This document shows positions 31,020 through 60,477 of a stretch of DNA of 64,000 nt, one piece after another. The notes under the pieces are model-generated. The model saw nothing but the letters and a program-made list of their open reading frames with translations, was not told the origin of the DNA and searched no databases. Both the position numbers and the translations under genes were made by a program. The stretch is from Anthoceros angustus (Eukaryota > Plantae > Anthocerotophyta): the NCBI GenBank assembly GCA_010909165.1, contig MU008176.1, positions 1,046,856 through 1,110,855 on the forward strand. Direction: 5' to 3'. Numbering within the stretch: the first letter of the stretch is position 1; each line of letters starts with the position of its first letter.

Positions 31020-34000
31020 TGCTCATTAGACAGTGTCATATTCTTAGTAATACAATATCAACAAGAAAACTCTCATTCTCTCCTTTGTATTCTCATCATT
31101 ACACCTGTTGAGCTGGCCCTCTTGCCCCTCGTGGTTGGTGACAGAACGGGCTCGGGGTGGGGTTGCTGCCAGTGTCCTCCCGCCCCCTGGGCCGCATCCC
31201 TCTCCGCCCTTCTTACGGCCTCCTTTGCTTCCTGCCACTCCGTCGGCAAGGGCAAAGGGACCAGCGCATTGGTGGAGGCCGTCTTCCTCCTCTTTACCTC
31301 CAGCCTAGTCCGGCGGGGTTCGGTGGTGCAGGGCCGTTGTGGGGCTGGCTGACGGTGCGCAGCGACCACCAACTCCTCCTCATTGCAACCTCCTCCCAGG
31401 TGCTCGGTGGAGGGACTAAGGAGGAAGTAGGAATTTCTTCCACACTTCCGGGATGGCGAGGGGTCCGTTCGGGCGTATGGAGTCCGGAATCCTCCCAATC
31501 CTCCTCTTCGAGACTACTTTGGCCTTGGAAGGCGGCCCTCCGCCTCCGGCCTCCTCGCGCTCCGCCTCAAGTAGGGCCACTAGACCCTTCCGAGCGCGCT
31601 CTTCCTCTCCCTCCTTGGAGGTTAAGGTGCCCCCACACATGGATGATGAGCGGCGATAACGCCCGACGGGCGCTTCGCTCCATGACTTCTTGGCCTCTGG
31701 TTGATCTGGCGAAGATGATTCTTCCCGATCGGCCCTCTTCCTCTCTGAGGCGCGGAGGAACACCGGCAAGTTGTTACCAAGGTGGTCCACCTTGATGAGC
31801 ATATTCCAGTGGGCGATGATCTTCGCCACCGCCCTCACCGCTTTATCCAGCAGTCCGACATCGCCCACCCGTTTGAGGAGCGGCCCCCGCCTCAAGAGTG
31901 CCGCCCTTGCGCCCACCTTCCCTTCACCTTAAGGGCTGCAGGACTCGCCCCCAACTTCCGCCAGCGGTTGTAAACCGCCCTCAGGACCTCTACGGTCCAT
32001 CTCCTGGGGTCCTCCCTCAGATTCTTGGAGCGGACCTCCTTGTTGGCCACCGTCAACACCTTCCGGGCGTATTCCCGGACCAAGGCAACGCTGTCGAAGG
32101 TCCAAACAGCCTGGAAGATATCCAGTGCGATCCTCCACGGCTCCTCGCCTCATGGTCCGAGTCATCGGGTAGCGTTTGGTGATGTTCCGCTCCACCAGGC
32201 GCCAGGTTCCCAGACCTCTACCGCCTTCTTGGGCCCCATTGCATGCGCCTTCGAGACGTTGTGGCTTGAGGATCAACAGTTCTCCTTTTTCCCTTCGCGG
32301 CGTCGACCGCTCCGGTCGCGAAAGAGAGCCGCTCATAATCGCGCTCGGGCACTCGAAAAGACAGCGAGAGAGGGTGTCCGAGCGCAAGTATCAGCTGAAT
32401 CGCGAGAGAATGACCTTCGTTCGGGGCCAAAGGGTCGGGAATGGCAAGCATGGAAATCGCCTTTGCCGAGTCCCGCATGGCTTACTAGCTTCGTTGCCGC
32501 CGCCGCTCGCGTACTCTAGCCTTACTCTGGCGCATGTACCCGGAGCGTGAGTACTTGCCCATAACAACCACGGCAACCCTACGGTCCGGTCATGCGCCTC
32601 TCGGCCCGTCCATGTGGCCCCTCTTGCCAAAATCGCTTCCCGTTCCAAAGTTACTTTGGCCTTGGAAGGGCGGCCCTCCGCCTCCGGCGCTCTCCCCTCG
32701 CGCTCCGCCTCAAGTAGGGCCACTAGACCCTTCCGGAGCGCCCGCTCTTCCTCTCCCTCCTTCAGGAGGTTAAGGTGCCCCCACACATGGATGATGAACG
32801 GCGATAACGCCGACGGGGGCGGCTTCTCGCTCCGCAGCTTCTTGGCCTCCTGGTTGATCCTGGCGAAGATGATTCTTCCCCAGTCGGCCCTCTTCCCTCT
32901 CTGTAGGGCGCGGAGGAACACCAGCAAGTTGTTACCAAGGTGGTCCACCTTGATGAGCATATTCCAGTGGACGATGATCTTCGCCACCGCCCTCCCCCGC
33001 CCGTGGTCCGAGCATCACCACCCGTTTGAGGAGCGTCCCCGCCTCAAGAGTGCCGCCCTTGCCTTCCACCTTCCCTTCACCTTAGGGCTGCAGGACTCGC
33101 CCCCAACTTCCTCCAGGCGGATGCCTCGGGACCTCTGGTCCATCTCACGGGTCCTCCCTCGATTCTTGGAGCGGACCTCCTTGTTGGCCACCGTCAACAC
33201 CTTCCCGGCGTATTCCGGACCAAAAACTGGTCGAAGGTCCAAACACTGGAAGATATCCAGTGCGATCCTCCACGGCTCCTCCTCCGTGGTCCGAACCGGG
33301 TAGCGTTTGGTGATGTTCCGCTCCACAGGCGGGGTTCCCGACCTCACCGCCTTCTTGGGCCCCATTGCATGCGCCTTTCGGACGGTTGGTGGCAGGATCA
33401 GCAGTTCTCCTTTTTCCCTTCGCCGTCGGCCCGGTCATGAAAGCCGCTCATACAGCGCTCGGGCACTCGAAAAGACGCCGAAGGCGGGGTGTCCGAGCGC
33501 AAGTATTCACCAGCGCGAAGTCGCTCGAGAGAATGACCTCGTTCGGGGCCAAAGGGTGAAGCATGGAAACGCCTTGTGCCGTGTCCAGTCGCGTAACCTC
33601 CCAGCTTTACGTTGCCGCCGCTGCCTCTAGCCTTACTCGCGCGTACCGAGCGTGAGTACTTGCCCATAACAACCACTGGCAACCCTACGGTCCTGGTCCG
33701 CTGCATGCCTGTCTGCCTCTCAGCACCGTCCATGTGGCCCCTCTTGCCAAAATACGCTTCCCGTTCCAAAGTTACTTTTCGTGGCGTACTTATCGCGACT
33801 TACTCTGGAGTGCAGTCCGGACTTACCGCGATCTACCCCGGAGTGCGGTCCGCAGCCGCTCGGCCACTCCGGAGTGCGGTCCGGAGTCACCTGTCTACTC
33901 CGGAGTGCGGTCTGGAGTCACCCAGCCTACTCCGGAGTGAGGTCCGGAGTCACCTTATTACCCACCCTGGCCTTATTTCCTGTCTTGTTTCTCACTCCAC

Positions 34001-38240: not shown

Positions 38241-38843
38241 CGTGCCCATCATCACAAATTTTATCCCCCCCAGATTCTGCACGGTTGCCGTGTGGATCAT
38301 TTCTTGTGTAGATTCCATGAGAAAAAATGGTATTTTTTCAATATGGTTTCAGTCCACACTGAAGTTCGTCTCAAATTGTTATATGGATTCAATGTTGAAA
38401 AAGGTTTCCAAAGATTCCGTGGCGATACAATATAGATTGCGCATGTTACCTTGCAGCAAACTCCACACATGTTCAACATTTATTCCATGTTTTGATATAT
38501 TGTTGATTTCCATGTCAAAATACCTTATGATGCTCATATTGTTTCTTTTTAATAGAAACTATATAAATCTCATGTGGATAGTATGTTGATTAAACGATCA
38601 TATTCCATATTGATTACATGTAACATAAATATCTAATAATAATACTATTTTATGATAAATTATATATATAGTTAATATATATTAAATAATTAAACAACCT
38701 CATGAATGTTTTATATGGAAACTCCATCGACATAACATATATTTGAGGTTCCATATTCAAGGATTCTATAGTATAATATATTAATAAGAAATATTTTTAA
38801 TATAGCAATCTCGTGGATGTGCTATATGGAAACTCCATCGAAA

Positions 38844-40520
38844 TCAAATATATTCAAGATTCGAGACTAGGGATCCGCATCGCTCGGTGTCTATGTTTGA
38901 CATTAACACATGGGTTGCGGACTGTTTGTTTTCCAACTTCATTCCTCGGTTGAAAGCATGGCGTGCAACCTGAACATTGCCCCACTGCTGTCGACAAACA
39001 GCCGATAGAGTTTGCCAAACTGCAGGCTTGGGTTGAGCAGGCAACTCATTCCCCACAACTGCAATGTTCAGAGCTTATAGTGGTTCGGAAAAACGCTCTC
39101 TCTACATTGAAGTGAGGATTAGATGAATGCCGAGTATGTTTGAGGCATCTATCACCACATAGCTTGGAACCAAGACTGTTTCTATCTTTGGGCTCACAGG
39201 GTCTGGGCCCCTCTCACGCTTGACCTATGAACAAGGTGTTTAAGGGTGTCTGCAGAGACAGGAATAGAGGGATCCGGGATGAAGTTTCCATCTCTTTCAT
39301 CGGGTATGGTAAACTGGCATGCATCTTCCAGTTCACCACATTTTGCAAATCCACCACGGATGCCCACCACTACATTAACTAGCAATCCTCTTCGACAATG
39401 CAGGAGCATGCCCTTGTAAGGCACCGTTTGAACAGGCCTTGGCAAGCAAAGTAAAATGGTCAGCCAAAAGCGTCCTCCTCCATTTGTCCATACATAACAA
39501 GCGCCTCTTGGCGAGCCCTTGCCTACCCAGTGAGGCATTCCAAGTCAAAACATCTTTTGTGTTCATGTCAAAAACCGGGCATCTTCTAGTTTACCACATT
39601 TCACATACATGTCCACAAGGTTGCCCACCACCACGTCACCGCCTCTTCGACAACTGAGTGCATCACCGCCCTTCTCAGAAGGCATCGGTGCTTCCACAAG
39701 CCTTCGAAGGCAAGTAACATGGTTAGCCAAAAGCAAGCCCTCTTGTCGATTTGTCCAAGCCCTTGTGCCTACCCTACCGAGGGCATTCCAAGTCAAAACA
39801 TCTTTTGTGTTCATGTCAAAAACCGGGCATCTTCTAGTTTACCACATTTCACATACATGTCCACAAGGCTTGCCCACCACTACGCCACCTCCTCTTCGAC
39901 AACTGAGTGCCTTCCAGAAGGCATCGGCTTCCACAAGCCTTCGAAGGCAAAGTAACATGGTTAGCCAAAAGCAAGCCCTCTTGCGCATTTGTCCAAGCCC
40001 TTGCATGTGTACCCGAATCGAGCATTCCATGTCACTACATCCTTTTCATGTCACAAAATCGGCGTGCATCTTTCGCCACATTTTGCATACGCAATCAAGA
40101 TCCATGTCACCACATCCTTTGTGGCCATGTCACAAAACTCAAGGCCCATTTTTGGTTCGCCACATTTTGCATACATGTCCACAAGGCTTGCCAACAAACA
40201 AGTTAGTAGGAATGCCACTGCACTACATCGCGGTGCACTTTTCTCGCCAGATTCTGTCGTGCAAATGCACAAGCTTGAAGGGCAGCTACAAAGACATGAG
40301 CATCGCCTTCACTCGACCTACCCATTTCATGGTACATGTATTGCCTCCCAGTTTCCGTAATTAGCATGTGCAGATTATGGAAAAACACATGAAGACATCC
40401 GGTTTGCCCACCCCGGTGAACCCATGGCCTCGCAGCCTACCTCCACATGCATACATGCGCATGATATGGTTCCCCACGTATGCACTCGTCTCGTACCCAA
40501 GTTTGGCGGAGATCATGAAT
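38844..40520 (-). pseudogene. PLS-class PPR gene with E domain, copy A (frameshifted)
   Basis: Motifs YVGNHIMRMYACGG, DAHVFVAALQACA, LVDMYVKCGKLEDA and DVLTWNA. E domain PAQPKPAVWQTL...QWGNVQVARHAF...SATHVLMSNI. No DYW domain. Confidence 0.85.
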
Positions 40521-40949
40521 TGACGCCCACAACCAAATCCTTCTTAGGCATACGCTTTAGTAGGTACAAGAGAGGAAATGGCAGACTACTCGCCACGATT
40601 CCAGTGGCTCCAACGGCATCGAAAGCTTCGACATAACGTGCTCACGTGCAGAATAACACCCATTGCCGATCCTGCACGCCTCCCGTGTTTAGGCTCATCC
40701 GGGAGGTGGACGGAAGGAGAGGTACCATGTCCCATCTGCAGATCCATGCACATGAGGTGCTCATCAACCCAAGTGGGTTAAACATGTTGCTTAAGACAAG
40801 ACTACCGACCCTTACGCCAAGTCGTGAAACGAGCGCTCTTCTTACCTCGTCTGTCCCACCACAGGCGGTGGTCCATAAAAATTCTGCCAAGTGTTCCCGC
40901 CTGCAACGACCGTAGCGGAAAACCCGTCCCTACCCACACTTTCAAGTGT

Positions 40950-42050
40950 TGGGCTCACAGGTCATGGGCCCCTCAGCTTGACCTATGAACAAGGTGTTTA
41001 AGGGGTCTGCAGAGAGGCATAGAGGGATCCGGGATGAAGTTTCCATCTCTTTCACGGGTATGGTAAACTGGCATGCATCTTCCAGTTCACCACATTTTGC
41101 AAGCAGTCCACCATGCCCACCACTACATTAACTAGCAATCCTCTTTCGACAACTGAGTGCATGCATGCCCTTGTAAGGCACCGGTGCTTGAACAGCCTTT
41201 AAGGCAAGCAAAAAAAATGGTCAGCCAAGTCCGCCTCCTCCATTTGTCCATACATAACAAGCGCCTCTTGGCGAGCCCTTCTTGTGCCTACCCAGTCAGA
41301 GGGCATTCCAAGTCAAAACATCTTTTGTGTTCATCTTTGTCAAAAAACTCGGGCATCTTCTAGTTTACCACATTTCACATACATGTCCACAAGGCTTGCC
41401 CACCACTCACGCCGGTCCTCTTCGACAATGATATGCACGCCTTATACAGAGGCATCGGTGCTTCCACAAGCCTTGAAGCAAAGTAACATGGTTAGCCAAA
41501 AGCAAGCCCTCTTGCGCATTTGTCCAAGCCCTTGCATGTGTACCCAATCGAGCATTCCATGTCACTACATCCTTTTGTTCATCTTTGTCAAAATCTGGCG
41601 TGCATCTTTCGATTCGCCACATTTTGCATACAGCAATCAGATCCATGTCACCACATCCTTTGTGGCCATCATCAAAAACCGTCCATTTTTGGTTCGCCAC
41701 ATTTTGCATACATGTCCACAAGGTTCCAACAAACAAGTTAGTAGGAATGCCACTGCACTACATCGCGGTGCACTTTTGCGATTCGGTCGGCAAATGCACA
41801 AGCTTGAAGGGCAGCTACAAAGACATGAGCATCGGCTTCACTCGACCTACCCATTTCATGATGCAGTTGTATTGCCTCCCAGTTTCCGTAATTAGCATGT
41901 GCGAGATTATGGAAAAACACATGAAGACATCCTGGTTTGCCCACCGTGAACCCATGGCCTCCTGACCTACCTCCACATGCATACATGCGCATGATATGGT
42001 TCCCCACGTATGCACTCGTCTGTACCCAAGTTTGGCGGTGAGATCATGAA
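40950..42050 (-). pseudogene. PLS-class PPR gene fragment, copy B (no E domain)
   Basis: Colinear with 39190-40520 and carrying the same motifs; one PLS triplet shorter than copy A. Confidence 0.85.
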
Positions 42051-42529
42051 TTCGACCCCACAACCAAATCCTTCTTAGTGTACAGTTTTGTACATGTACA
42101 ATAGAGGCGAAATGGCGGACTACTGTCCGCCCCGATTCCAGGCTCCAACGGCATCGAGCTTCCCTCGACGCCGCGTGCTCACGGTAGCAGAACAACACCC
42201 ATTGCCGATCCTGCACGCCTCCCGGTTTAGGCTCATCCGGGAGGTGGACGCGGAGAGGTACCATGTCCCATCTGCAGATCCATGCACATGAGGTGCTCAT
42301 CAACCCAAGTGGGTTAAACATGTTGCTTAAGCCGACACCTCGCCGGACCCCTTACGCCGGAAGTCGGAAAGCGCTCTTCTTACCTCGTCTGTTGTCCCAC
42401 CAGGGCGGGGTCCACAAAAATTGCTGCAAGTGCTCTCACAGCAAGTAGTAGGTGGAAAACCCGTCCCTACCCACACTTTCTAAGTGTTGGGCTCCTTACA
42501 CCTGCACTGAGGCTTTGCTTGCAGGAGTT

Positions 42530-43300
42530 GACTTGGCCGAGCCCTTCTGTGCCTACCCAGTCCGAGGGCATTCCAAGTCAAAACATCTTTTGTGTTCATG
42601 TCACAAAACGGCGGCATCTTCTAGTTTACCACATTTCACATACATGTCCACAAGGCGCTTGCCCACCACTACGCCCCGCCTCTTTCGACAACTGAGTGCT
42701 GCCGCCTTATACAGAAGGCATCGGTGCTTCCACAAGCCTTGAAGGCAAAGTAACATGGTTAGCCAAAAGCAAGCCCTCTTGCGCATTTGTCCAAGCCCTT
42801 GCATGTGTACCCAAGAATCGAGCATTCCATGTCACTACATCCTTTTGTTCATCTTGTCAAAATCCGTGCATCTTTCGCCGCATTTTGCATACACGGCAAT
42901 CAAGACATGTCACCACATCCTTTGTGGCCATGTTGTCAAAAACTCAAGGCCCATTTTTGGTTCGCCACATTTTGCATACATGTCCACAAGGCAACACAAC
43001 AAGTTAGTAGGAATGCCACGACTACATCGTGCACTTTTCTCGCCAGATGTGTCGGCAAATGCACAAGCTTGAAGGCGCTACAAAGACATGAGCATCGCCA
43101 CTCGACCTACCCATTTCATGATGTATTGCCTCCCGTGAATTAGTAGCAGAGATTATGGAAAAACACATGAAGACATCCGGTTTGCCCACCCCGGTGAACC
43201 CATGGCCTCGCAGCCTACCTCCACATGCATACATGCGCATGATATGGTTCCCCACGATGCACTGCCCACCCAAGTTTGGAGATCATGAATTGACGCCCAC
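42530..43300 (-). pseudogene. PLS-class PPR gene fragment, copy C (3'-truncated)
   Basis: Colinear with the 5' part of copies A and B; lacks the terminal motifs. Confidence 0.8.
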
Positions 43301-45949
43301 AACCAAATCCTTCTTAGTACATACAGTACAAAGGTACAATGAGACGGAAATGGCGACTGCTCGCCACGATTCCAGGCTCCAACGATAAAGCTTCCCTCGA
43401 CATAACGTGCTCACTAATGAAGAATAACACCCATTGCCGATCCTGCACGCCTCCCGGTTTAGGCTCATCCGGGAGGTGGACGGAAGGAGAGGTACCATGT
43501 CCCATCTGCAGATCCATGCACATGAGGTGCTCATCAACCCAAGTGGGTTAAACATGTTGCTTACACAAGACCGGGACCCCTTACGCCAAGTCGTGAAAGC
43601 TCTTCTTACTGTTGTCCCACCACAGGTGGTCCACAAAAATTCTGCCGCAAGTGCTCCCTCCTGCAACAGTAGCCGGAAAACCCGTCCCTACCCACACTTT
43701 CTAAGTCTTGGGCTCACACCGCCGCACTGGAGGCTTTGCTTGCGAGGAGTTCCTTCGAGGTTAGCAGAGCCCCTCATAGAATCCTGGACACACACCAAGC
43801 TGAGCTCACTTCCACGGTCCACCACCGAAAGACTCGAATTTATTAACAAGACAAGCAACCAACGACTGGGCTCACTTCTCCACAGCGATTCGCCCAATAC
43901 ATAAGTATGTAGCCAGAGGATCAGTCGAGTCGAGGGCTCAAAGCTAGAAGTGGTAGAGCGCAGAGCTTACCAGAAGGCTCGATGGTGGAGCTGCAGAGCT
44001 TACCAAGGCTCATGCACTGTGACTGAGTGAGCAGCGCAGATGCCGAAGGACCTGGATGGCTAGCATTGCTTCATTGCACGTCGAGATGAAATCACGAAGG
44101 ACCTTGGATGAAAGCTCAAGCGTCTCCGGCTTCTTCCACTTCTCCCCATCCGAATTAAAGATCCCATCTCCTAGCAAAGGTTCCAAAGTCTTCCCACATG
44201 AGGTGATGACTCATCAAATGTTTTCATTGACTACAACATAAAGCACAAACGTGTTGAATAGTCCCTTCACAATTTATTCTTTGGCGGTGGAGGTGGTGTG
44301 TACCTTGGGGTAGTTGGCCCTGGTAAGAAGAGGAGGAGGCGGCCTCACATATTGAGATGATTTTCCTCATTAAAGCTCCACACTAGGAAGGAGCACAAAC
44401 GTGTTGAATAGTCTAGACATTGGGTAGTTGGTCCCGAGAATTCGCTCACGGCGGGATCGGCTATAAGCAGTAGGTCCGGCCTCCCACCGGTTGAGAAGGT
44501 GAGGCTAGCTCCGGTGACCATGATATGTAGTATGTAACTCATACATCCTCTCAAAGTTGTAGTACATCTCAAACATTGAGCCAAAATGGCCAACACTGGA
44601 CCTTATGGCTTTGATCCATCCCGCCACCTTTTGAATCGAGCTTTTCATTGATCCAAGCTGGCTTAAGCATGTTGTTTAACCACAGGACACCACAAGACCT
44701 CACGGACCCCTTGTTGGAAGTCGAATGGGAGCTCTTCTTCTCTCGCCTATTGTCCCACCACATAGTACGGTCCGGAAAGACTTGTTGCCACAAGTGCTCC
44801 TGCCCTAGCACCTACCGGCATAGACTAGAAAACTGTCCCTACCCATACACCGAATGCATAATGCGCTAGTCGACATTGACTTTCATAGTACCCCACCGCC
44901 GCCTCCAAAGCTCACCGACTGCACCCGGCCAGCGACCGACTTCCACGACAAGCACCTGCGAGCCTCACAGGCCCGATCGCACCTTGGTGAGCTCTAACTT
45001 GAAGGCCTCTTGCATCTCCCACAGGACGGCATTGGCCAGTGCGAAACCAGAATCTTAAGGTGGGTTGAAGCCCGCCACAACAATGCAACAACAGCCCACA
45101 AAAACACACCCCATATTGAAGCACAACATTTGGCAGCCGTAAGTAGAGGCAAGTTCAATTCTTCGCGGGAATGTCACCGTTCAGATTTGGTACTTCTGTT
45201 CGTGAAAGACGAGATGTGACGGGCTGCAAGGAACTCGTCTTACCAAGCAGCTGTAGTTGCCATGTTTTTGTGACAATGTCGTCCTTGTCACGCAGTTTGT
45301 CCGACCTCTGGAAAGCGGAGAAAATGAAGCTAAGCAAGTCACCAAGGAAACTCATCGAGGGTATTCGCTCAAACCGAATTTACGTGATCCGTGCATCTGT
45401 TTCGCTCGATAAGCTTTCTCCGAGCTCATCGATGAAGGTTCACTAGTTCATATGAAGATACTACTGTTGGATACGCAGAACCCGATCTTGCTGTGGCCAT
45501 CTTTAACCTCCGGTGGTTGCTGCGGACCAAAGAAAGAAGAATTATATCACTCTCTTCCCGGAAATCATCAACGCGTCGACTGGGAACTCCCTTGGAGGCT
45601 TGACTTTGCTCTTCTTCCTCTCCATAGTCTCATCAAGGCACGTGCAACAATCAGAAGATTGTTGAAAAGCTAGGTGGCGAAAGTTTGCGCCACCTAGCTT
45701 CAATACGTGAGTCGAGAGTTCTAATCTCGTGCACCTAGATATGATCCAAAATGCAGACACATCTCCAAGCATTAGACAATGTATCAATCGTCATTCTGCA
45801 TTGGACCCCAAATGCTCCGAGGTTTGAGGTTAGCGGTCTTGAAAGTTGCCCCACTATCAACAAGCAGATAGAGTTTGCCAAATTCGGGCTTGGGTCCAAC
45901 AGCCAACTCATTCCCCACAACAACGCGTTAACTTATAGTGGTTCGGAAA

Positions 45950-48200
45950 GAACGTCAATCTCTCTGCATTGAAGTGAGGGATTAGATGGACAGCTCTGAG
46001 TATGTGAAGCATCTATCACCGATAGCTTGGAACCCAAGACGGCCGTTTATGCTGCCTCCGAGCTTCGTTCGAGATGCCCACACTAGTTCCTTGCATTGGA
46101 CCAATCTATTCGATGCATTCTCAGGAACTTCTTGGTAAAGTCGCACAAAGCATAATTTTCGCTCCACAACCTCATCTTCCCCCAAGGCACTATTGCACAC
46201 AAACATCAGTCTAAGCTGCCCATACCAAGTTATTGGATCCGATCCAGCTGCCTCCATCTGTAAAGCCACATCACTAAACCATGGCCTGCCAAAGAAATCT
46301 TGTGTTGCATGCACATACATAGGCCAGGATCCAAACCGATCACACACTCCAGCAGGTATCGCCATGGCTTTCTTGACTACAATTTCAGTCACTTCATCAA
46401 GCCCTTGGTCCCTTAGATGTGCATGTTGGAATTCAGCTCTCACCTCAGGCTGGCCATCTAAGAACTTCCTGACCTTGTTAGTCAATTGAGTAGAATCACT
46501 TGGGAGATAGAGTTTAGTCAATTGGAAGTGACACATCGATGTCCTGCTAAACACATTCTTACCCGTTCGGACAGCTTCATCCAAAGCAGTGTCATCTGAC
46601 TCCTCTTCAACTTCAAACCCCTCTCTCTGGTGAGTTTGTCTTCTTAAAGCTATTAGTCGTTGCTGGTGATGGACAAGATGAGCTGCAACATTTCTCCGAT
46701 TGGATGCTCTATAAGGGATCTTCATAAGAGCAATATGCATCTTCTCAAACATATTGGTATTAAATTCCCATGCTAGTCCCGACCTTCTAATTGCATCACT
46801 AAAATGTGACATCAAATGCACCTTGAGTATTCCAAACTCAGATTTACGCGATTACTCATATGCAACTTCAAAAATCCACCAAATCTACCATGAGTCATCC
46901 ACTTCTTGCGCTTGCCTCATGTGATGAACTCCGAGAGCAAGTTGTACCATGACAAAAACTTCACAAACACCTTAACTATCGTGTTGGGATACACACCAAG
47001 CAGAAGACAACAACTTGCATCATCGCTCTATGTTCAAATGCGCGAAATTAGCCTGTGATGAGAAATACCCTTCTTTGTCATTACCTAGTAGTCTGAACTC
47101 GGCATATCTGTGGTTTGTTGCAATGAATTGTAATCGTCGATCCATTTCTTTCAATGGCTTTCTACTCGGGCAAATGTTGCTCAAGCGGGTTCCTCACCAT
47201 TTCCACAAGGATTCCTACCATGCGCTTGAAAAGACTGCCACTTTGATGTAAAAGATCCGGGTGGATAGAAAGGTATGGATTTCCCAACTCATCAATCCGC
47301 CATTGAATCCCCAAAGAGCACACTCCACGCATATAATGACCAACGTTCGAGGTGATCATTCTCCTGCATTTGGTTGCATTCGTATCTCGTCATAAATCAC
47401 TTCATATGCATCTCTCGTCTCATGACTCACGGACTTGCACCATGCTCGCCTGCTTTCTTCACAAGACAAATCTGCAGGCCTTTGACACTTGTTAGAACCA
47501 TATGTGCAAGTAACCTTGCAGCCCTCAAACTATCACAAATATATAAGTATATCATTGGAAATACCCATTGCTTGTCTCCCAAGGATCATCCATTTCCAAT
47601 CACTGTATAGGAAGCATCTTTTACAGTTTGAGAATGATCTCCAAGCAACGTTGAAAGGCCTTTAACTTCCTCCTTGCACTTTGCCCCGAACTTGTATGTA
47701 TCTCGGATGGTATGATTGGTAAGAGGGCTAGAAGAGCATGCCCTTCCGGCCTCGGCCTCGAGCTCACATTTGATATTGCCGAGACTCATCATCAAAGGAT
47801 GACCACAATAGTCTGTCATTGGATAAACTAGTCGATCGAATATAAAATCACCCCGCCACAACTCCACCTTCACACTTGCTATCAACTAGACTCATATGGA
47901 TTTCCACCACTTCCGATCCGGTGTGGTGTAAGTCTCGCTAGCTTCAATTTGAGTCCGTATAAAACCTTCCCTATTGGTGAAGCCCCAAATAGTTCCCTCA
48001 ATACTTCACTCGAATCTCGATATGCAATGTGAGTGTATTGTCTCGGGTTCATTCACTAAAACCTCATGCCATCCATCTGTGAGCACGCCAAAGAAGCCTC
48101 ATACTTTCTCACATGTAGCACTTTTGAAGGTCCTCCGGCTTGAGCGAAGGATGAGACAAAGACTTGAACCAAGCGAGCATTTATATCTCGATTAGACAAT
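45950..48200 (-). mobile_element. Plavaka-type (PF18759-like) DNA transposase, frameshifted
   Basis: Ordered motifs: YPMTDYCGHPLMMSLGNI (~47.8 kb); VFPMIYLYICDS (~47.55 kb); NPYLSIHPDLLHQ..LFK (~47.25 kb); IDRRLQF; HFSDAIRRSGLAWEFNTNMFEKMHIALMKIPYRASNRR (~46.75 kb); FFGRPWFSDVAL; LRAVHLIPHF..FFPNHY (end). They match the recalled Plavaka motif order. Confidence 0.75.
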
Positions 48201-48230
48201 CCTGCACCATTTCTACAATTGCGTAAGAAA

Positions 48231-48912
48231 TGTCTTTGTGGCGCGACTTTCACCGATGGCCAGCCGCGCGCACAATCCGTGTCGTTGTAGGAAGAGTCGT
48301 TCCCAAAGGAATAGCGAGCTCCGTTTACGGCGTTGAGGCGATTCTCGTCTTACTGCGTCCGTTCGGTTCCAACGCACACACTCCTCGATTCACGTCTAAC
48401 TACTCGCGACAAACACGCGCGGGCCGGTATGGCCAAGCGTTTAAGGACCCGTTCGCGTCCGTATCGTTCACGTTAAATCACTCACACACCTCGTCCGTTC
48501 CTCTCTCCTCACACACTTATCGGTCTTAGGGAAAGGCGCGGGTTACGATCCGGACCTCCTCCGTCGTTCAGGGCCTCTCCGTCCGGGCTCTGCCGCCCTC
48601 CGAGTCCCTCCGGCTCACGTTCGGTCCGTTCGGCGCGGGCGCGGCTGCAGGCGAGCACGGGTCCCCGATCACCCTCCCACACACCACAACACGTTAGGTC
48701 CGTCACGGGACCACGATCAATCTCCGGGCGCCGTGCACCTTTCGGTGACTCGGGACTCACGTTAGCAAGAAGACACACAAAGGTGCGCAGAGCAGCATCA
48801 ACACCAAGAGAAAGATGATTTATTGAGGCGGTGACCCTCTTATACTACGCCCGGTCGGCGTCTTTATTACCCCTATTACGGTGATCGGTATGCCCTAATC
48901 GGCCGCCTACCA
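48231..48912 (-). mobile_element. 3' LTR of a minus-strand retroelement
   Basis: TG...CA ends. The minus strand contains TATA-like GTATAAGAG and AATAAA. It is directly preceded on the minus strand by a polypurine tract (48913-48934, AGGAGATAGGGGAGGAATAGGA). The left end is uncertain (48231 or 48239). Confidence 0.6.
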
Positions 48913-48939
48913 TCCTATTCCTCCCCTATCTCCTTCGCG

Positions 48940-51900
48940 GCGGTGGTGGGAAGGTCCGGGTTCCGCCTTGGGATTGGTGGTCCAATCTCCCGTCGGCGAT
49001 TGCGGCGCGCAATCGGATGATCGCGGTAGACCCCTCCTCTCCGGAATCACAGCCGGGTTGGGCTCGGCGTGATGCGGCGACCGCCGTTACCACGTCATCC
49101 TCCCAGCCTCCCGTGGGTCCCCTCGGTGGGGCCACCGTCTATCCTCCCCTAAGCGTAAGTCGAAGGGGCTCCTCCTTCTTGCGAGTCCGGACCTCGAGGT
49201 CGGTCTCGACTCGGTCACGAACTCCGAGTCAGGCTTATTTCTGAGTCCGGTGGGTCGGCCTCGTCTCTGAGGTTCGGACCTCGGGGTCCGAACTTGTCTG
49301 GTCCGGTCCCCAAGCTCCGGACCCCTTATCTGTGGACCTCGTACTGCTAGGTCCTCCTCCCTACCCCCCGACCCTTGTCTTGGGTCGGGTTGGCTCCCTC
49401 CTTCTGCACCCCTTTCAGGCCCGTCACCTCCCTTCTCCTGAGCGGGTTGCGGTGAACTTACCCTGGGGTCCGTTGCGTCTCGCTCCTCTTGGGGCTCTTC
49501 TCCCCTGCCGTCGTCTCCAAACAGGGCCCCTAGAGTCCTGTCTTTGTCCCATGCCCTTCTTCCCCTCAAGGCCTTCCGGGGTCCGTCTATTTGGCGGGGA
49601 GGCCTCTCCTGGGGCTCGGCGTGGTAATAGGCAAAGTCGAATCCACTTGTTGGATTGCCTCTTCCACGTGTGCGGGCACCGATACTCCCTTCGCCATAGG
49701 TGCTCAGGTCTTTGCCGCTTGTTGGACCACCTCCCCGGGTTTGATAGGCGGGCAGGCTGCTTCTTGGTGCAAAGGCGCCTCGGTCACCTCCATGGCATTT
49801 GTTGCTCCACTGCTCCAACTCCCTTGCTTCCGTTCGCTGCGACTTACCAGCCATAGCGGCGTTCCCCTTCGCCTTCCTCAATGGACCAGCGGCTTCTTAT
49901 GCCTTCCGGTGCTCTCTCTCTTGTCCATTACATTAACTCCGCCATCTCCCTCTCAGACGGTCGGGCAACTGCGGTGCGGGCTTCGCCAGGCCCTTCTCCA
50001 TCTCGGCGGCGTCCTGCTCCTGTTCCATCGCGTCTCGCTCCTCTTGAGGCGGGCGCTCTATTTCCGTTCGCGTTCGCGACCATGTCCTGAGACTACCATT
50101 CCTCTCAATGGTAGTTTGAAGACTCAAAGTCTCCTTGCGGTCTTCCATCTCACCCATTTCTTTGCTCCACCTCCGGGCTGAGTCGGAGATCCTCCATCTC
50201 CTTGTCGCGAACTTCACAGGCTGGGCGGTCGCGCTTGCTCCGCCACCTCCTGCTCCATCTTGAGGCGGGCGCTCTATCTCCGCTCGAAGTCTTGGATTCT
50301 CGTTGAGAACCCCTTGCTCCCAGCGTCTTGGGTTGTAACTCCAAGGTGTCCTTCTTGTCCTCCGCTCCTGCCGCCTCCCTTCTACCTCCTGCAGTGCGCC
50401 ACAGGGTCCCCGATTTCCGGGTCTTGGCCTCAGTGTTTCTGCGGCTCGTCGTGCTTGCTCTTGCCGCTGCTCGGCCTTGATTGGCGTGGCCGGCCTCCCT
50501 CCACGGTTCGATCACGCGATAGTGATCGCGATCGCTGCGTGGCCCCGCCTCCTTGGCCACCTTCACAGCCTCTCGGCTTGGCTCTGGTCTGGTCGGCGCC
50601 TCCGCGGTCCGCGCCCGCTCTGCGCCCCCTCTTCGCCTCCTGTTCGCTACCCCTCACTGCGAGGTCCTCGGCCCGCTTGGCCTCCTTAGCTGCTTGTGCT
50701 CCTCCGGTGAAGGAATTTAGTCCGGTCCTTGCGGATGGACGGACTTCCCCTCTCGGCCTCCGGCGTTTCCCTTCCTCAATCGGCCGAGGCTTGACCTTCC
50801 TTCTGCCTCCTGGGCCCCTCCAGCTCACGGAGGAGTACCATGCGCCTCGGGTGGCTTCTACCTCCACAGGTCTTCTCGGCCATCCCGAGACCCCAAATCC
50901 ACCAGTGGCAGGACCCGCCGTGTTTCTTCCACGGCCGAGTGAGGCTCCCACAAAGTCCGTGGCGGAGCCGGCATTTCCATCGCCGAGGACCTCCATACCC
51001 GCTGTCGGGAGTAAGTCGGTGGGTTCTCCGGACCTAATCGGGACCCTTAGGTCACGAGTCTTTGACTCGGGCTTCACCCTCCTTGGCCCTTTTGGCGCGA
51101 GCTCCTTCTCCGCCCTTTTCTCCAGGGCTCGGAGGAGGTGAGGTCGGGGCAAGCCCTTTGCCCCTTCACAGTCGGCAGGCCGGCTCAGTGCAGGCTGTGT
51201 CCTCCACTCCTGGCGGCGTCCCTTTACGCCCTCCTTCGCTTCCTCCGCTTCTTGCCACTCAGGTAGGCGGGGGTAAAGTCTTGGCACCGTCGAGGTGCAG
51301 CGTTGGTAAGTGGTCTTGCGTCTCTTGGTTCCCTCACAGTCGGCGGGGCTCCTGGTGTGGTTGTGGTGGTGGCGGGGCTATTGGGTCGGGCCGCCTTCTG
51401 TTTGGTGCTCGGTTGGGGCACGGGAGGAGGCGGGATTTCCTTCCATACTTCCACAGGTGGTGAGGGGTCCGTTCACGTATAGTCGAATTCCCTCGATCGT
51501 CCTCCTCCGGGTCCGTTTGGCCTTGAGTCGGCCTCCCCTCGGGCGCCCTTGCCGCTCCACTTCGGCGGGGCCTCGGTCCTTTCGGGCGCCGCTCAAGCTC
51601 TCCCTCCTTGAGGCTCGAAATGTCCCCATACATGGATCGGTATGGGGCGGCCCAGTGCGAGGCTTCTCGGTCTGAGCTTGCGGGCCTCGCTAAGGCGAAG
51701 ATAATCCTTCCCAGTCCGCCCTCTTCCCATTGCGGCGCATGCGAGAATACCAGCAGTTATCACCAAGGTGATCCACCTTGGTGGCGAGTTCAATGGACAA
51801 TGATCCGGCTACCGCCCTTACTCGGATCCGGCGGGTGGGGATATCCGTTGGTGGTCCTCTGCGTCGAGCCTCGGCCGCCGCGGCATTGCGGCCCTATCTT

Positions 51901-52660
51901 CCCTTCGCCTTGAGGGGCTCGGCACCACTCCCCTTCTTCCTCCTTTGGGCGGTTGTAGGCCGCCTCGGGACCTCAAGGTCCATCGCCTTGGGTCCTCCGG
52001 AGGTTCTTGGACCGCACCTCCTTGTTGACCGCCACAAGATCTTCCGGCGAACTCCGGACGGTGGCCTGTCGAGCGTCGGACCATGGAGCGCATCCGGTGC
52101 CACTCCTCACTAATTCTCCCGCTTCCTCCGGCCGGGGCCCAAAGTCCGGATAGCGCGGGTCACAATGTTGCGCTCCACGAGGTTCCATGGCTCCCAAACT
52201 TCCGAGCTTTTGGGTGCCATCGCCTTCTCTCCCTTTGTTCTGTGCGGCGGAGTTCCGGCACGATCGCCCTCCTCGCGCGTTCGCTCTCCAGCGGCGGTGA
52301 ACTACGCTCGAAGGTCTTGGGCGCTCAAGAGATAAGCGCCCGAGCGGGTTGCGGGCGCAGAGGCTGCGGTGTCTGTGCCGGTTGACCTTCCCCTTGGCGC
52401 CTTGGGAGTAACGGCGGGGCGCCTCTTCCTGTCCGTAGCGCGAGGAGTGCATGGCTTATTCTCGACCTTACGCCTCCCTTGCTGCGGCCTTCGCGCGCGT
52501 ACTCGTTCGCCGCGCGCGATCCAGCGGGCGTGAATACCGCTATAACGGCCCTGGCGAAACTCACGGTCCTCGGTGCATGCCGACCTCCACTCGGGGCCGT
52601 CCCGTGGCGCCGCTAGTCCGTCCTCACGGCTCAACTTCTAAGTTACTTTCCGGGCGTACT
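48940..52660 (-). mobile_element. Long degenerate TE-borne ORF ('DWGRIIFA' family, low-complexity middle, coiled-coil C-terminus)
   Basis: Homologous to 31.4-33.8 kb (AAGTTACTTT...GGCGTACTTATC start region; KRADW motif at ~51700). E/K/R-rich heptad segments at 49.9-50.3 kb. No RT, RNase H or integrase motifs seen. Confidence 0.65.
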
Positions 52661-52899
52661 TATCACCTTGGACTGGGTAGTCGGACTTATCCGTAGTGGC
52701 GCTGCCATAGTAGGTCGGTCGTTGCATTCCGTGATCCGGAGTATACTCCGGTCGATGCTGCTATCATACTTATTCCTCCTTTTCCGCCTTATTTTATCCT
52801 TCGCTCCTACAAAAAACAAAACCCTACTTATTTCTAACCCCAAGGGAAGTCGTAGTCCACATACTCCCCTTCTCACTGTTGGTCTCTCCGCCAACACTA

Positions 52900-54030
52900 A
52901 GCGTGATACTTTTTCACCGCCACCGTTCACCCGAGTGGGCGGCAATTCACCATCAATGCCGAGCGGAGCGGACCCATTGGCGTATACAACCATGGTAAGG
53001 TCCCATCCATCGAGGTGGAGTTTACGGAAGTGCATATGTCGGTACATCGTAAAGGGGCGGATCTCCCTCCTTCACATACTCCCGATTCGGGCACATGCCG
53101 GCTTGCGTTGATTACATACCCGGTGGCGGGTGCCATTTGCATTTCTCGGGGTAAGGCGATGGAGCGGGTGGTGGGGATTGGTGAGCGCACAGGGTATGTT
53201 GGTACTCCGGCGCACAGAGCACACCTTCCATTGCCTCTCGGTAAGACTTTGGCCTCCCACTGATTTTCAAGGCGGACGGACCGAAATGCACCATGACTCT
53301 ATTTGGCGGTCTGCCCAGTGGCGCAGCAATTCTTCACACGCTATCTCGACTTGGGTGGTACGTTCCTCGATTGCCTTCCCATTTAGCTAAAGCTTAAGCA
53401 CCTCCCGTAAAGAGGCGTGTCTCTGACCTCAACCGTGGGATGTCGTAGGTACTCATGTGGTGACCCCACCCCACGCTTATGGGGACGTCCGCGACGTCGT
53501 GGCCGGTCTGAAGTGTAACCTTTCGAGTGCGGTGGCGGCCTCTGCGCGTCCTCCTCCTGCCGAGGCCGGGTTACATCCCGGTGAGGAATCACGATTGCTT
53601 GCCAAAGACTCTCGCCGCCACGCCCGTTGGGCTCCGATTTCCACAGTTTCCTCCCCCGGGGCTTCGACGTCGGCATCCAGGCCCGGTGGTGTAATTGCCT
53701 CAAGGCGCTCACAGGCGGGCCGGTCTCCGGGTTCCCCTTCCACGGTCGTGTCCTCTCGGCCCGCCATTTTTATTGGGGCCAACCCCTGCCTCCGTGATTC
53801 GTGCCATTCGGCACGATCCATGTGTGTTGCGATCGGATGTTTCTCGGCAGATGGCCAGGAGTCGGGCCCCGGCCGGAGTGGCGTCATGCCGTCGTGTTGT
53901 CAGAACTGGTGAGAATCGTTCTCTTCTGGTGGGTCCCTCCATGCTCTTTCCACAGCCGATCGTGCGAAGGCCGGACCTGGATCCTCGGGAGTTCTCCTCC
54001 GGGATGCGCCGATGGCTGGCTCTGATACCA
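52900..54030 (-). mobile_element. Retroelement 5' internal region: tRNA-iMet PBS (54019-54030) followed by possible gag-like ORF remnants
   Basis: GCTCTGATACCA is the reverse complement of TGGTATCAGAGC. Broken minus-strand ORFs follow (MAGREDTTVEGE...; KSYREAME). The gag assignment is weak. Confidence 0.55.
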
Positions 54031-54034
54031 CAGA

Positions 54035-54369
54035 TGTTACGACCAGTCCAGGGATTTGCTGCAGAATTTCGGGGACGGGCTTTCCGTCCTGGTTTCGCTA
54101 TTTGTACAGGATGCGTGCGCGTCCAAGAAGGTCGCGCGTGCCTACTCCACCTACCTTACCTACCCGTGTCTTGGGAGGTGCGGTAGGTATTTGTTACCTA
54201 CGTAATTCAGGTTTTTCCTAGTCCTAACTACAGTTACGATAATCTACCCTATATATGGTTTATATCTAGGTAGCTACCTCTAGTTACGTTTTATAAAATG
54301 CAGCTGCTACGGATGCCCCCGTCTATCTTCCCGTATCGCGAGGGTTTTTACGTGGAATGGGTGTGGACA
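54035..54369 (-). mobile_element. 5' LTR (~335 bp) adjacent to the PBS
   Basis: TGTTAC...GTGGACA with TG/CA ends, 4 nt from the PBS. No partner copy in the window. Confidence 0.6.
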
Positions 54370-54379
54370 TTTGTGGAGC

Positions 54380-56836
54380 ATCTCGCCTCTTGGTGGTAAA
54401 TTTGGGATGGTGTGGGGTGGCAATCATGTTGTTCCAAGTCCTTCCCTCTCCGCCTGCCACGCACTCTTCTCATGCTCCAGCTCCTACAATTGCTGATCTT
54501 GAGCTCCCAACTCCGCGCGCTTCTCCTCCAAATTGTACCGGGTTCTTCGCAATTCCTCTTCCATGTCCCGGATCTTGATGCCTTGGGTAGCCATCACCTG
54601 CTCTTGTGCGTCCATTTGTTGGGTCGCCACCTTCTCCCTTCCTAGGGCCTCTGTTTTGCTCTTTCTCTCCCGCTCTAGCTGGGCAAAATGCTCTTCCTTA
54701 CGCCTCCCTCCGAATCTGTTGGGTGGTTGCACGAATGGCTCTCTCCTCGATGCAGCTGACAACCTCCCCTCTAGGACCTTCTCAGCTCTCCTGGTCCACG
54801 AGATCCCAGCTGGAGCTTCTCCTGACCTTCTCCAAACAGCTGCCTTCTCGTCGGACTCCATGGCTGCAATTGCCATTTAGTCCACTGCTCTCCTCTCCGT
54901 CATTTCTTGGGCTTTGACTTCCTCGACATGCCCACAAGGAGGCTGCTAGTTCCTAGCCTCCTTCAAATCCACTGGTGGGTGCCTCACAAGCACTCGGCAA
55001 TTCTCTAGGGGCCCCAAATTACGCACTTTGTTGGCCTCTTCTTCCGGAAATCTCAGCTCCCTTGCACCTACTTGCCGCGCCACAGCGGCGTGCAGGTCCC
55101 CTCATGGTTGCCCCATCCGCCCTTCCTCCAAGCGCGGGTAGTGGCGGCCCTAGCAGCGCCCATGATGCTTCGCCGCTCCTTCCCCTTCCCTACATGGTAA
55201 TTCTTGCCCTACCGGCGTAGGGTGCTTGCCTACCGCACTAGGCTGCTCCCCTCTGCATGGTAGTCACTTACCTACCGTAGTGGGGCGCCACCACGGTAGT
55301 CTCGCCCTTGGGTAGGTTGCCTCCCTACCGGGGTAGGCTGCTGGGGTGCCTCTCCCCTAGGCACAAACGAGATGGTGGGGACTCCCCCCACCCTTGGGGC
55401 CATCACCCCTCCTGTGGTAGTCCTCCGCTCATAGACTACCATTCGGCCTTCCTCGGCCGGTTCCTGTTCCTCTCCTCCTCCTTGCTCTTGTGGGGGAAAA
55501 GCTTCCCACTCCGGCAACCTTGTTGCCTCTACATCCTCCGCCCTTGGCCCTGGCATGCTTGTGGAGGTCTAACCTCCCACGGTCTTCCTCGATGCAAAAG
55601 GCAAAGGCCTTTCCAAGCTTGGCTGGAGATGAATTATCTCCGAAGGATGCCAAGCATCTTCCAACTCCTTGCTTGTGAGAAGTCCCTCCATTTCCCACAA
55701 ATTGAAATTATTTAAGGGTTATGTAGACCAATTGCACTAAAACAATTACATATTAAAGAAGATTGTTCTTATCAAGAAAATATACATTGAACTAATTAAA
55801 ACGAAAGGTAAGTTAGTTTTAAACACTGCCTAGAGGTGTGCCTTTTGGCTAGAGGCACAACTCTTAACAAACAGGTATGTCTGTTTATATCTATACATAT
55901 AGCTTATCTACTAATGACTTATCACTAAATTATAAGCTATGTAAAACCTCTAAAACCCTAGGGAGCCGTCGGCACATATCTCCTTCTACACAAATGCACC
56001 AAATAGGTGCTAAGGTAGCAGGGCCTTGGCCCTTCCTCATCCACCGAATTTGGCTTGAGGAGCTTCTCCCGGTGGTGGATGTAGGCCTCATACATGATGG
56101 TGCCCCAATCTGGCTTGGCTCCTCTCGAAATCTTCCACAAAAATTGCAGGAAGTTGGTGCTGAAATAGGAAGTCCTTTGGTAATTTACCAACCCCAGCAC
56201 AATCTTCGCAAAGAGCCTCCACTTCAGCTCTTTGATGCTATCTGTTTTCCAGCCATTCTTGGCATGGGCCTTCACTCCTCCGTCCATCATGTCGAGGAGC
56301 TCCTGCGGAATTTCGGAGAGGGCCGTCCTCTTTCCTCCATTCGTCCTCTCGAGGAGAGCAATTCCAGAGCTCTCCTCCTCCGGTCTCCCATACACCTGTC
56401 GAATGCTCCTTACGGTCCAGCAGCGAGGATCCGTTCGAGCATTCCTCTCCGGTAATGCGGCAAGGGCTGCCTCTGATTGATGGAGATTGATGAAGCACTC
56501 TAATCAACTCCAAATTGGTGTAGGCCCATTGGCGGCCATACACCATCAATTGGATGTTATCCTCCTCTGCCCATTGCCGAAAATCAACCAAATCGCGGAG
56601 GTTAAGCTGCCCTGCAAAACAAGTGGATTGGGGCATCTCGACTTCACCCCCTCCTGGCGGCGCAACCTCCGCTGCTGCCTTCTTTCCTTTCCCACTTCGC
56701 GAGGAGGAGCCCTTGACAGGCGGTTCCTTCCCTTTGCCCTTTCCTGCTGGTGATGGACAAACACAGCTCTCTCCAATTGCTCGTAGTAGACATCAGGTGG
56801 CAAGTGCTGGTGGTGTACAAGCGCAAGGGTCACCAA
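54380..56836 (-). mobile_element. Degenerate TE-borne ORF, distant member of the DWG family
   Basis: RQWAYTNLELIR...IRGSP; KWRLFAKIVLGLVNYQRTSYFSTNFLQFLWKISRGAKPDWGTIMYEAY...PCYLSTYLVHLC; coiled coil at 54484-54876. Confidence 0.6.
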
Positions 56837-57628: not shown

Positions 57629-60477
57629 TTTTCATCTCATTTAGTTCTTAGTGGTTTAGGAGATTTTTGAGGATGCTTGTTTGTAACTATATCATAGTTA
57701 CAAAAACGCGGATCCTTACATTCTCTTGCTACTTATGGCTGTCTCTTCCCCATTTTGTGGTCTTCTTTGCGGAGAAGATTGCTAGGTTTTATACTAGCAC
57801 TGGGTGTTTCTTATTAGGCATTTGAGGTGGAGTACACTTTTATTCCTTTATGCATATAGATTTCTCTAATATTTTTCAAAAATATTTTTGATATAATAAT
57901 ATGGTATAGATAAGTAATATTTTAATGTCTAATTAATTTTTTATTTAATATTCTGTTTTAATAATATAGTATCTAATGAATATATTAAAATTATTTATTT
58001 TATAGGAACAATTTATTGAATAAGAATAGACACTACATTGAAATGTATATAACTTCAATATCTCATCATTATACAAATAATGTACTTTCATAAGGGACTA
58101 CGTGTGGTCTCCCAACGTCTTTGAACCTAGATGTACTCCATGTATATTCTTGTAGATTATAAATATGTATGTATAATTTATAAAATGAATGTATTCACCA
58201 TGAAGAATCGATAGTAGAAGATACTACATTTTCTACACATGCTTTCTATACAAGCTACTTTGATTCAACATGAATTTTTTTCTTAAAACATGAATATGTC
58301 ATGTACTTTCTACATGTAAACTATGTGATCCTCCTAAATGTTTGAAACTACATAGAATTTACATATACATATATTCAATCATTTTAATATATAAATAAAA
58401 AATACACATTGAAACCACAAAGCAAGCATAGGAGTTGATAATGAATGAACTTAATGTATAATCCACATAACAAAATGGTACCATAGTTTTCAAGTTGATT
58501 AGATGTGAAAACTTTGCCCAAAGTCAATCAATCATCTCATGCATTTTCAACACAGAATTCGTGCGAACCTCCGAACTGTCAGAATCCACACAAAAACCCT
58601 AAAGGGCTGGATCCCGTGCATTTTTCACGCAGAATTTATGTGAACCTCCAAACTGTCACAATCCACATGGAAACCCTTGGGAGCGCGATCTTATGTGTTT
58701 TCAATATAGGATTCGTGTGAATTTCCAAATTATCATAATCCATATAAAAACTCTAAGGGGTGGGATCGTGTACATTTTCAACGTAGAATTCGTACGAATT
58801 TCCGAACTTCTAGAATCCATACGGAAACCTTAGAAGCAGAATTTCAAGGTTGATTAAACATGGAACTCCAGTAAAAAATTATCAAACATTTCGCACATAG
58901 AACCTGCACGTACCTCCGAAGTGATGGATTCTATATGGAAATCGTACTGAATCTGGGGGGGGTAAAATTTGTGATGATTCCGTACCTTGGCCCTGAAGGT
59001 AGGAGTATCTCTTAGTTCATCATCGATGCGGGCAGCTCGATCTTGCACAGCCTTGGCCTGCCGCTTCAAATTGCAAGCTTCCTTAAACAATGAGTGCTCC
59101 CTAGGAGCCATGGCAACAAGTAGCAGGCAGCTCAAGCGGACACGAAGCGAGGAGGAGGAGGGGGAGGAAGCGAGAAGCGAGGATCGGAGGAAGGGAGAGA
59201 GAGGTGGGACGCATCAATGTCCGAACCGTGGGCACAATTGTCAATGGGTAAAGTGAGCTGATTTAGACTTACCCGAAGTTAAGTTTTATGGTTAAAATAA
59301 AAAGTTAAAAGTTAAAATAGATCATAATAATAATTATGATAATGATAATAATAATAATAATAAATACTGTAAGATAAGAAGTGTGATAAAATACATAAAA
59401 GTAAATCATTCAAAATTCATATTCACACCATTCGTACTCTATCACAAGATAGCCAAATGTACTTTGCCATATGGCACAAAAGTGTGGCACCAAAGCATGC
59501 TTGCACCCATCTAAGGACCGGCCAATTTCGAAGCCGTTAAGAATGCCCGAAAGAGTATGGAGGAAGTACCTGTAAAGACTTTAAAGCTGACCCACCTACT
59601 CTTTTCTAATTGCACAATTGCCCTAGGACTGCAAATAACCACACATCAAGTTAGTAATTGTTGCCTACTTAAGGAATTGAATACATCTGACAAATTTTAA
59701 TCTTAAACATAATACCATTATTGTAGTTACTATATATAATTTTTAATTTTATTTGATTTTATTTCTATTTATTAATATATTATGAAAAAAATGTTATTTA
59801 TGCAATGGATACGGTATGATAATTACTTTAAGAAACTGAGGCATATTTTAGTATGTATCTTAAAAGAAGGGGGTGCATAGAGTTCTTGGGTTAGAATATT
59901 TTCAATTTAAGAAAAGCTCAGCGAATATTTGTAAATAGAGCTGACATTAAAGGTGTCGGTGCAATAGATGTTTGGTAATTACTTTAAGAGTCTAAGGCAT
60001 ATTTAAGAAATTGCGAGAAAAAAAGGCATATTTAAGTTTGTATCTTAAAGAGAGGACGATATGAGGGCTACATACATCTAGTTCTTAGGTTAGAAGATTT
60101 TAAATAGGAAGAGCCCAATGAGTATACATAGCTAGGGGCGACATTAGAGGTATTGGTGCAATCCATGGTGAAGACTACATAGAGGTCTTGGGGGTTAGAA
60201 ACTTGTTAGTTTGGAGTTGCTCAATGAGTATAAATAGGGGTGACATTGCAGATTAAAAAGATTTCATTTCTGTATAAGAGCTTGGAGCTTGTAGACGCTT
60301 GAAATAAGATTTCTTTTGAGATTTTTTATTCTTATGATAATTATTGAAAGTGTTTGCTTTACAGTGAAAGTCATCGACAAGCTCAACAATACAATTTGAG
60401 GATAATTATTGTATTTTGTTCCTGATACCATCCTGAGTTAAAATACTTATCTCTTTAGTCAAGACGTATTTTTCAAA

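Follow-up and report, generated by a model that had tools for sequence, protein, structure and literature searches.

A decayed PlavakaB-type transposon of Anthoceros angustus with pentatricopeptide repeat gene fragments as probable cargo

In a 64,000-nucleotide stretch of the Anthoceros angustus genome (GenBank assembly GCA_010909165.1, contig MU008176.1, positions 1,046,856 to 1,110,855; referred to here as the window), the end of a Plavaka transposase meets sequence of the pentatricopeptide repeat (PPR) family at two places, on the minus strand at about 39 and 46 kb. The initial annotation read these junctions as a direct transposase-PPR fusion. Both were found to lie within a single DNA transposon of PlavakaB type, which is old, inactive and of the cut-and-paste kind, and in which all PPR parts are dead cargo. 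The complete interpretation, i.e. a dead PlavakaB-type element spanning 38250-58976 with PPR sequence as its cargo and a hybrid, Pack-CACTA-like origin, is considered probable. It removes the apparent oddity of the transposase-PPR "fusion", which becomes cargo within a transposon.

Ends and transposase of the element

The search for Plavaka ends (CATCACAAAA with a 2-bp duplication) was made among inverted repeats in the 25-64-kb part of the window. The longest inverted repeat in this part pairs 38248-38296 with 58930-58978 and contains terminal inverted repeats (TIRs) of 28 nt with 1 mismatch. Exactly two matches to the TIR occur in the 64 kb, in inverted orientation, against 0 expected. The element thus delimited has the termini CATCA..TGATG with AT on both outer flanks; PlavakaB families have been described with CATCA..TGATG termini and target duplications of 2-3 bp (PMC12730594, 2025). 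The element and the features of its two ends, together with its transposase gene, are as follows.

38250-58976, genes on the minus strand: PlavakaB-type DNA transposon, 20,727 bp, holding both junction copies
38250-38277, plus strand: 3′ TIR, beginning CATCACAAAT; putative 2-bp target duplication AT at 38248-38249
38664-38862, no strand assigned: 3′ subterminal direct repeats, two copies with 111-bp spacing, AT-rich
45929-48232, minus strand: Plavaka transposase pseudogene (phmmer, PF18759 relatives, tblastn)
58534-58832, no strand assigned: 5′ subterminal direct repeats, 77-bp period, 3-4 copies
58949-58976, minus strand: 5′ TIR, ending ATTTGTGATG; putative 2-bp target duplication AT at 58977-58978

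All host gene fragments, comprising pieces of PLS-class PPR sequence and a shorter piece covering the S2 and E1 motifs (S2/E1), lie within 38250-58976. The initial annotation had pointed to the lack of a TIR at the junction. That observation is true, but it is no longer odd: a junction without a TIR is expected because both junctions are internal to an element with TIRs at 38250 and 58976, and the 3′ TIR sits 818 nt downstream of the transposase stop codon.

The transposase was identified from a 279-amino acid open reading frame (ORF) at 45985-46821, for which phmmer in a full HMMER scan returned 134 relatives, the best being P0001 (840 amino acids, E = 1.6e-51); P0001, P0006 and P0038 carry the Pfam domain PF18759 (Plavaka). 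By tblastn, residues 104-839 of P0001 could be mapped to 48232-46072. Direct Pfam analysis of the transposase pieces of the window gave a single, weak match (E = 0.028), because the gene is broken over many frames, its stop-free pieces switching among all three. Judged from its sequence, the gene spans the full length of a transposase but is dead, so that the full transposase initially placed upstream of the 46-kb junction holds for extent (48232-45929, tblastn) but not for integrity.

The identity of the transposase tail was established by profile. Alignment of the C-termini of the homologues revealed a conserved tail of the form ..ILRA.H..PNF....FF.N.YK(F/L/I), with a stop codon directly after it. 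A profile was built from the C-terminal 38 residues of 16 homologues. Among all 3,487 pieces of the six-frame translation of the window, it matched only minus-strand pieces at 45911-46012 (E = 9e-6) and 39105-39224 (E = 2.8e-3), the next best match having E = 1.7. As the profile finds exactly two pieces, the original identification of a transposase tail in both copies is correct, with the proviso that the tail is legible in either copy only by frame hopping, i.e. when read across frameshifts.

The repeated transposase tail and PPR block

Comparison of the window with itself by BLAST gave one off-diagonal match, 38971-39176 against 45840-46040 on the minus strand, with 78% identity over 215 columns (E = 1e-36), which bears out the homology of the 39-kb and 46-kb segments that had been proposed. 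By global alignment the two copies, hereafter copy A (39 kb) and copy B (46 kb), are 87% identical at aligned bases when only substitutions are counted, corresponding to a substitution divergence of 13%, and differ by ~12 small insertions or deletions (indels). Local alignments of the flanking sequences, both upstream and downstream, scored like shuffles (z < 1), so the repeat is a sharply bounded block of ~205 bp. Plain tandem segmental duplication was rejected as its source, as no similarity was found past the edges of the 205 bp. On the minus strand, the transposase body runs without a break into copy B from upstream, and on its downstream side copy A passes straight into E1, the subterminal repeats and the TIR. 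The two copies form a direct repeat within the same element, with 6.66 kb of DNA enclosed between them; the two junctions, initially counted as independent loci, are in fact this one repeat. The parts of the block and the PPR sequence joined to it are listed below.

39068-39176, minus strand: copy A transposase tail, last ~35 codons with two frameshifts, TGA stop at 39070-39068
38889-39059, minus strand: copy A PPR fragment, end of L2/S2 plus E1, without E2 or DYW
45929-46040, minus strand: copy B transposase tail, contiguous with the transposase body; two frameshifts needed, stop lost
45840-45921, minus strand: copy B PPR fragment, S2 only, with deletions of 1 nt and 6 nt, ending at the start of E1

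In both copies the PPR stretch starts 8 nt past the end of the tail. For copy A this is past the natural TGA stop codon, which is kept right after ..HYKL; in copy B the stop codon is gone via a small deletion. The frames of the tail and the PPR piece differ in copy A and copy B alike, which makes the junction a join at the DNA level and not a protein fusion. The join is not translated as a fusion, given the stop codon in copy A and the frame change, and a tail fused directly to a PPR motif exists only as DNA.

For the PPR piece itself, three methods agreed on copy A, where the stretch is open for 72 codons. It aligns with residues 402-453 of the synthetic PPR-DYW protein 9kfx_A in the PDB (end of L2/S2 plus E1, E = 6.5e-4), it matches the Pfam E_motif at E = 5e-4, which is under the gathering score, and its nearest ESM Atlas clusters are all E_motif/PPR (score 0.94). 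No E2 or DYW sequence was found after E1 of copy A; the end of E1 is truncated, an AT-rich repeat starting ~25 nt past the aligned PPR part, and the DNA downstream is AT-rich subterminal repeat without any PPR-like piece. A PPR E motif immediately after the tail had been described for both junctions. The end of L2/S2 does follow ~8 nt on in each copy, but E1 is present in copy A only, and the "full E domain" annotated at 39 kb amounts to the end of L2/S2 plus E1 (39059-38889).

The 3′ ends of relatives from other organisms offered a comparison for the junction. In four sources (L001, L002, L003-5 and L006) the same transposase tail and stop codon are followed by AT-rich non-coding DNA, and no match to the PPR piece was found in the DNA after the stop in any of them, which makes the PPR adjacency a derived feature of the A. 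angustus element lineage. No recognisable TIRs were present within 6 kb in the surroundings of L002 (GCA_965154635.1, CBCUJL010000004.1, 6001-9768). At this locus the annotated 840-amino acid Plavaka protein ends prematurely: the natural stop, preceded by the conserved tail, lies ~150 nt beyond the annotated end in the DNA. The gene model is probably truncated or has missed a short intron. Word-index protein searches for further copies in the A. angustus genome, with the 279-amino acid ORF and with the S2/E1 ORF, returned no matches, nor did metagenome scans with the protein and with the junction DNA pattern.

Two further features of this region were recorded. Between the repeat copies of 38971-46040, indels are about one-third as frequent as substitutions (~3 per 100 nt), many of them in homopolymers, and this high share points to an unusual mode of decay or to errors left over from long-read assembly. 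A near-perfect palindrome of 34 nt is located at 45667-45700, just downstream of copy B.

Enclosed DNA and origin of the layout

The DNA enclosed by the two copies consists of PPR units in tandem and a further 2.1-kb stretch, designated Z. These are given here with the one other large feature inside the element.

39188-40959, minus strand: dead PLS-class PPR unit 1 (unit alignment, PDB matches)
40949-42529, minus strand: dead PLS-class PPR unit 2 (unit alignment)
42527-43751, minus strand: dead PLS-class PPR unit 3 (unit alignment)
43752-45839, minus strand: enclosed DNA Z (2.1 kb), contiguous with PPR unit 3
48300-55600, no strand assigned: GC-rich block inside the element, 57-66% GC, ~7.3 kb

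The stretch 39188-43751 is made up of three tandem PPR units that are 84-87% alike, with ~3 indels per 100 nt and a substitution divergence among units of 9-14%. Pieces of the units match the PLS9-PPR structure 5iww_D (E = 7.7e-12) and the synthetic PPR-DYW protein 9kfx (E = 5e-13) in the PDB, and these matches run through motifs of the MYAKCG/DVVTW type. No long reading frame is left in the units, the stop-free pieces being short and in alternating frames. Pfam returned almost nothing on the PLS pieces; as for the transposase pieces, the near-blank result is due to the broken frames. The PLS tract noted at 39 kb is therefore of PLS class as described, but it comprises three decayed tandem units.

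On the minus strand, the 10-nt motif GTGAGCCCAA is found at 39190, 40950, 42480 and 43745; these sites comprise every PPR unit junction, the border where the upstream Z meets unit 3, at which it is native, and the border between unit 1 and the transposase tail. The presence of the same motif at all unit junctions and at the native border indicates that the triplication arose at a short repeat, and GTGAGCCCAA probably mediated it. At the end of unit 1, ~100 nt of non-PPR sequence is followed by GTGAGCCCAA and then by the copy A transposase tail; the PLS tract and the S2/E1 piece thus do not fit together as one gene cut cleanly in two. Neither TIRs nor CACTA ends were found at the limits of the enclosed 6.66 kb, and simple insertion of a nested transposon was ruled out for want of ends of its own. 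No family match was obtained for Z. It contains a 58-amino acid ORF (minus strand, 44013-44186) that may resemble the conserved LLGDGIF..DGEKW..KVLRDF stretch of P450s of the CYP704/CYP86 type; this candidate was set aside, as Pfam, PDB and Atlas gave it no support. ORFs of the GC-rich block were of low complexity and had no Pfam match. A part of this block, 51404-52059, is 68% like two stretches within 31399-33220, outside the element. The block may represent another repeat family, either nested or carried as cargo, and may be a later insertion.

When the upstream side of copy B is joined to the downstream side of copy A, a simple ancestral 3′ end is obtained. On the minus strand its order would have been the transposase with its last ~35 codons and TGA, then 8 nt, a 170-nt PPR scrap, the subterminal repeats and the TIR. 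The scrap (end of L2/S2 plus E1) would have been captured from a PLS-class PPR gene, and may go back to an earlier turn of the process that is proposed for the larger cargo. In that process, two members of the family in the same orientation would have flanked PPR sequence in the chromosome. The left parent would have been cut off 3′ of S2, keeping everything up to S2, the right parent would have lost everything 5′ of the tail and kept the tail onward, and the surviving outer ends would define one hybrid element enclosing the DNA between, the retained parts of the parents overlapping by 205 bp. The enclosed 6.66 kb would derive from the 2.1 kb of Z and a PPR fragment, the latter triplicated later in tandem at the 10-nt repeat. 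Hybrid origin by this Pack-CACTA route is the favoured inference from the layout, and the similar divergence of the blocks (13%) and of the PPR units (9-14%) suggests events of similar age.

Several points weigh against this reconstruction. It is drawn from one element, agreement of the 2-bp flanks (AT with AT) is expected by chance in 1 of 16 cases, Pfam itself backs the transposase pieces of the window weakly (E = 0.028), and the 7.3-kb GC-rich block is not accounted for. The layout expected from a hybrid origin would also result from an internal duplication-insertion by faulty repair. Two truncated Plavaka copies that lie in tandem as separate elements, with host PPR DNA resident between them and no history of moving together, would produce it too; the layout would then be an unrelocated intermediate of the hybrid model, and the PPR tract a host pseudogene cluster and not cargo. 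Such intermediates are described in rice by the Pack-CACTA model paper (PMC6379663), and the 13% substitution difference of the blocks could reflect different parent elements. Set against this are the outer flanks, both AT as after a single insertion (weak evidence), and the state of the PPR tract, which is as decayed as the surrounding transposon. On balance two truncated copies are thought unlikely. Had a Plavaka element landed between the L2 and S2 motifs of a host PLS-E PPR gene, and had the junction then been copied by local segmental duplication, the PPR sequence would be target and not cargo. The order at 39 kb (PLS tract, transposase tail and S2-E1, all on one strand) fits such an event, but the subterminal repeats and TIR of the element itself follow E1 directly, which places the PPR piece inside the element, and the ~100 nt of non-PPR sequence before the tail is again at odds with the two PPR parts being halves of one gene. 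We regard this explanation as highly improbable.

The favoured reading, of PPR sequence as dead cargo, also bears on the broader proposal that a Plavaka element captures or shuffles PPR modules and thereby opens a new route for the expansion of RNA-editing factors. The first half survives in part: the element does hold the 170-nt S2/E1 piece and a 4.5-kb triplicated PLS tract, although all of it is dead. That Plavaka is actively capturing or shuffling PPR modules, with the tail-E junction as a productive fusion feeding editing-factor expansion, is scarcely credible. Two kinds of PPR pieces in one element speak for it; the stop codon and frame change at the junction, the restriction to S2 and E1 without E2 or DYW, the frameshifts in all PLS units and in the transposase, the origin of both junctions from one direct repeat in one element instead of independent loci, and the relatives without PPR sequence after the stop all speak against it. 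The new route was accordingly not upheld, the PPR pieces all being cut short, frameshifted and/or in a frame other than that of the transposase, with no E2 or DYW among them. It is very unlikely that a Plavaka family still active in the genome has the stop-PPR junction as a fixed feature and, landing time and again beside PPR genes, gains PPR modules at its 3′ end over nested rounds; if true, S2/E and PLS modules would have been moved round the genome, with occasional seeding of chimeric PPR genes.

Comparison with known systems

PlavakaB belongs to the CMCT clade and was described in Agaricomycotina fungi (PMC12730594). The A. angustus element shares with it a PF18759-related transposase and CATCA..TGATG ends within TIRs; it differs in residing in a seed-free land plant, in being dead, and in carrying scraps of host genes instead of a TET/JBP gene. 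Plavaka has been reported in algae and moss, and a loss in land plants was inferred (PMC13519894), so that the present element constitutes a modest range extension; little has been reported so far in the literature on Plavaka elements in seed-free land plants. As with PLS-class E-type PPR editing factors, the captured fragments have PLS motifs and an S2-E1 stretch that aligns with synthetic PPR-DYW, but they differ from these factors in having no continuous frame, no E2 and no DYW, and in the truncated end of E1.

The closest parallel is found in Pack-CACTA and other Pack-TYPE elements. In the Pack-CACTA model, neighbouring elements in the same orientation lose complementary ends by aberrant excision, and the resulting hybrid encloses chromosomal DNA (Catoni et al. 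2019, PMC6379663); hybrid capture is also treated in a review (PMC13317346). Shared with these systems are genic host fragments between transposon ends and a layout that fits complementary end loss in neighbours, whereas the element of the window is of Plavaka lineage, not CACTA, and its parents overlap by 205 bp. Pack elements are moreover short, non-autonomous and without a transposase gene, whereas a dead transposase is present here at 45929-48232; the element is thus of a cargo-carrying autonomous type and not a classical Pack element. The case is one of ordinary gene-fragment capture of an already known kind, and not a new gene-building mechanism. Its value is modest: a natural fossil of the Plavaka lineage, found in a seed-free land plant, it shows the arrangement expected under the capture model of neighbouring insertions and complementary deletions, in which each of two parents contributes an outer end, their overlap is kept as a repeat, and genic DNA lies in between.

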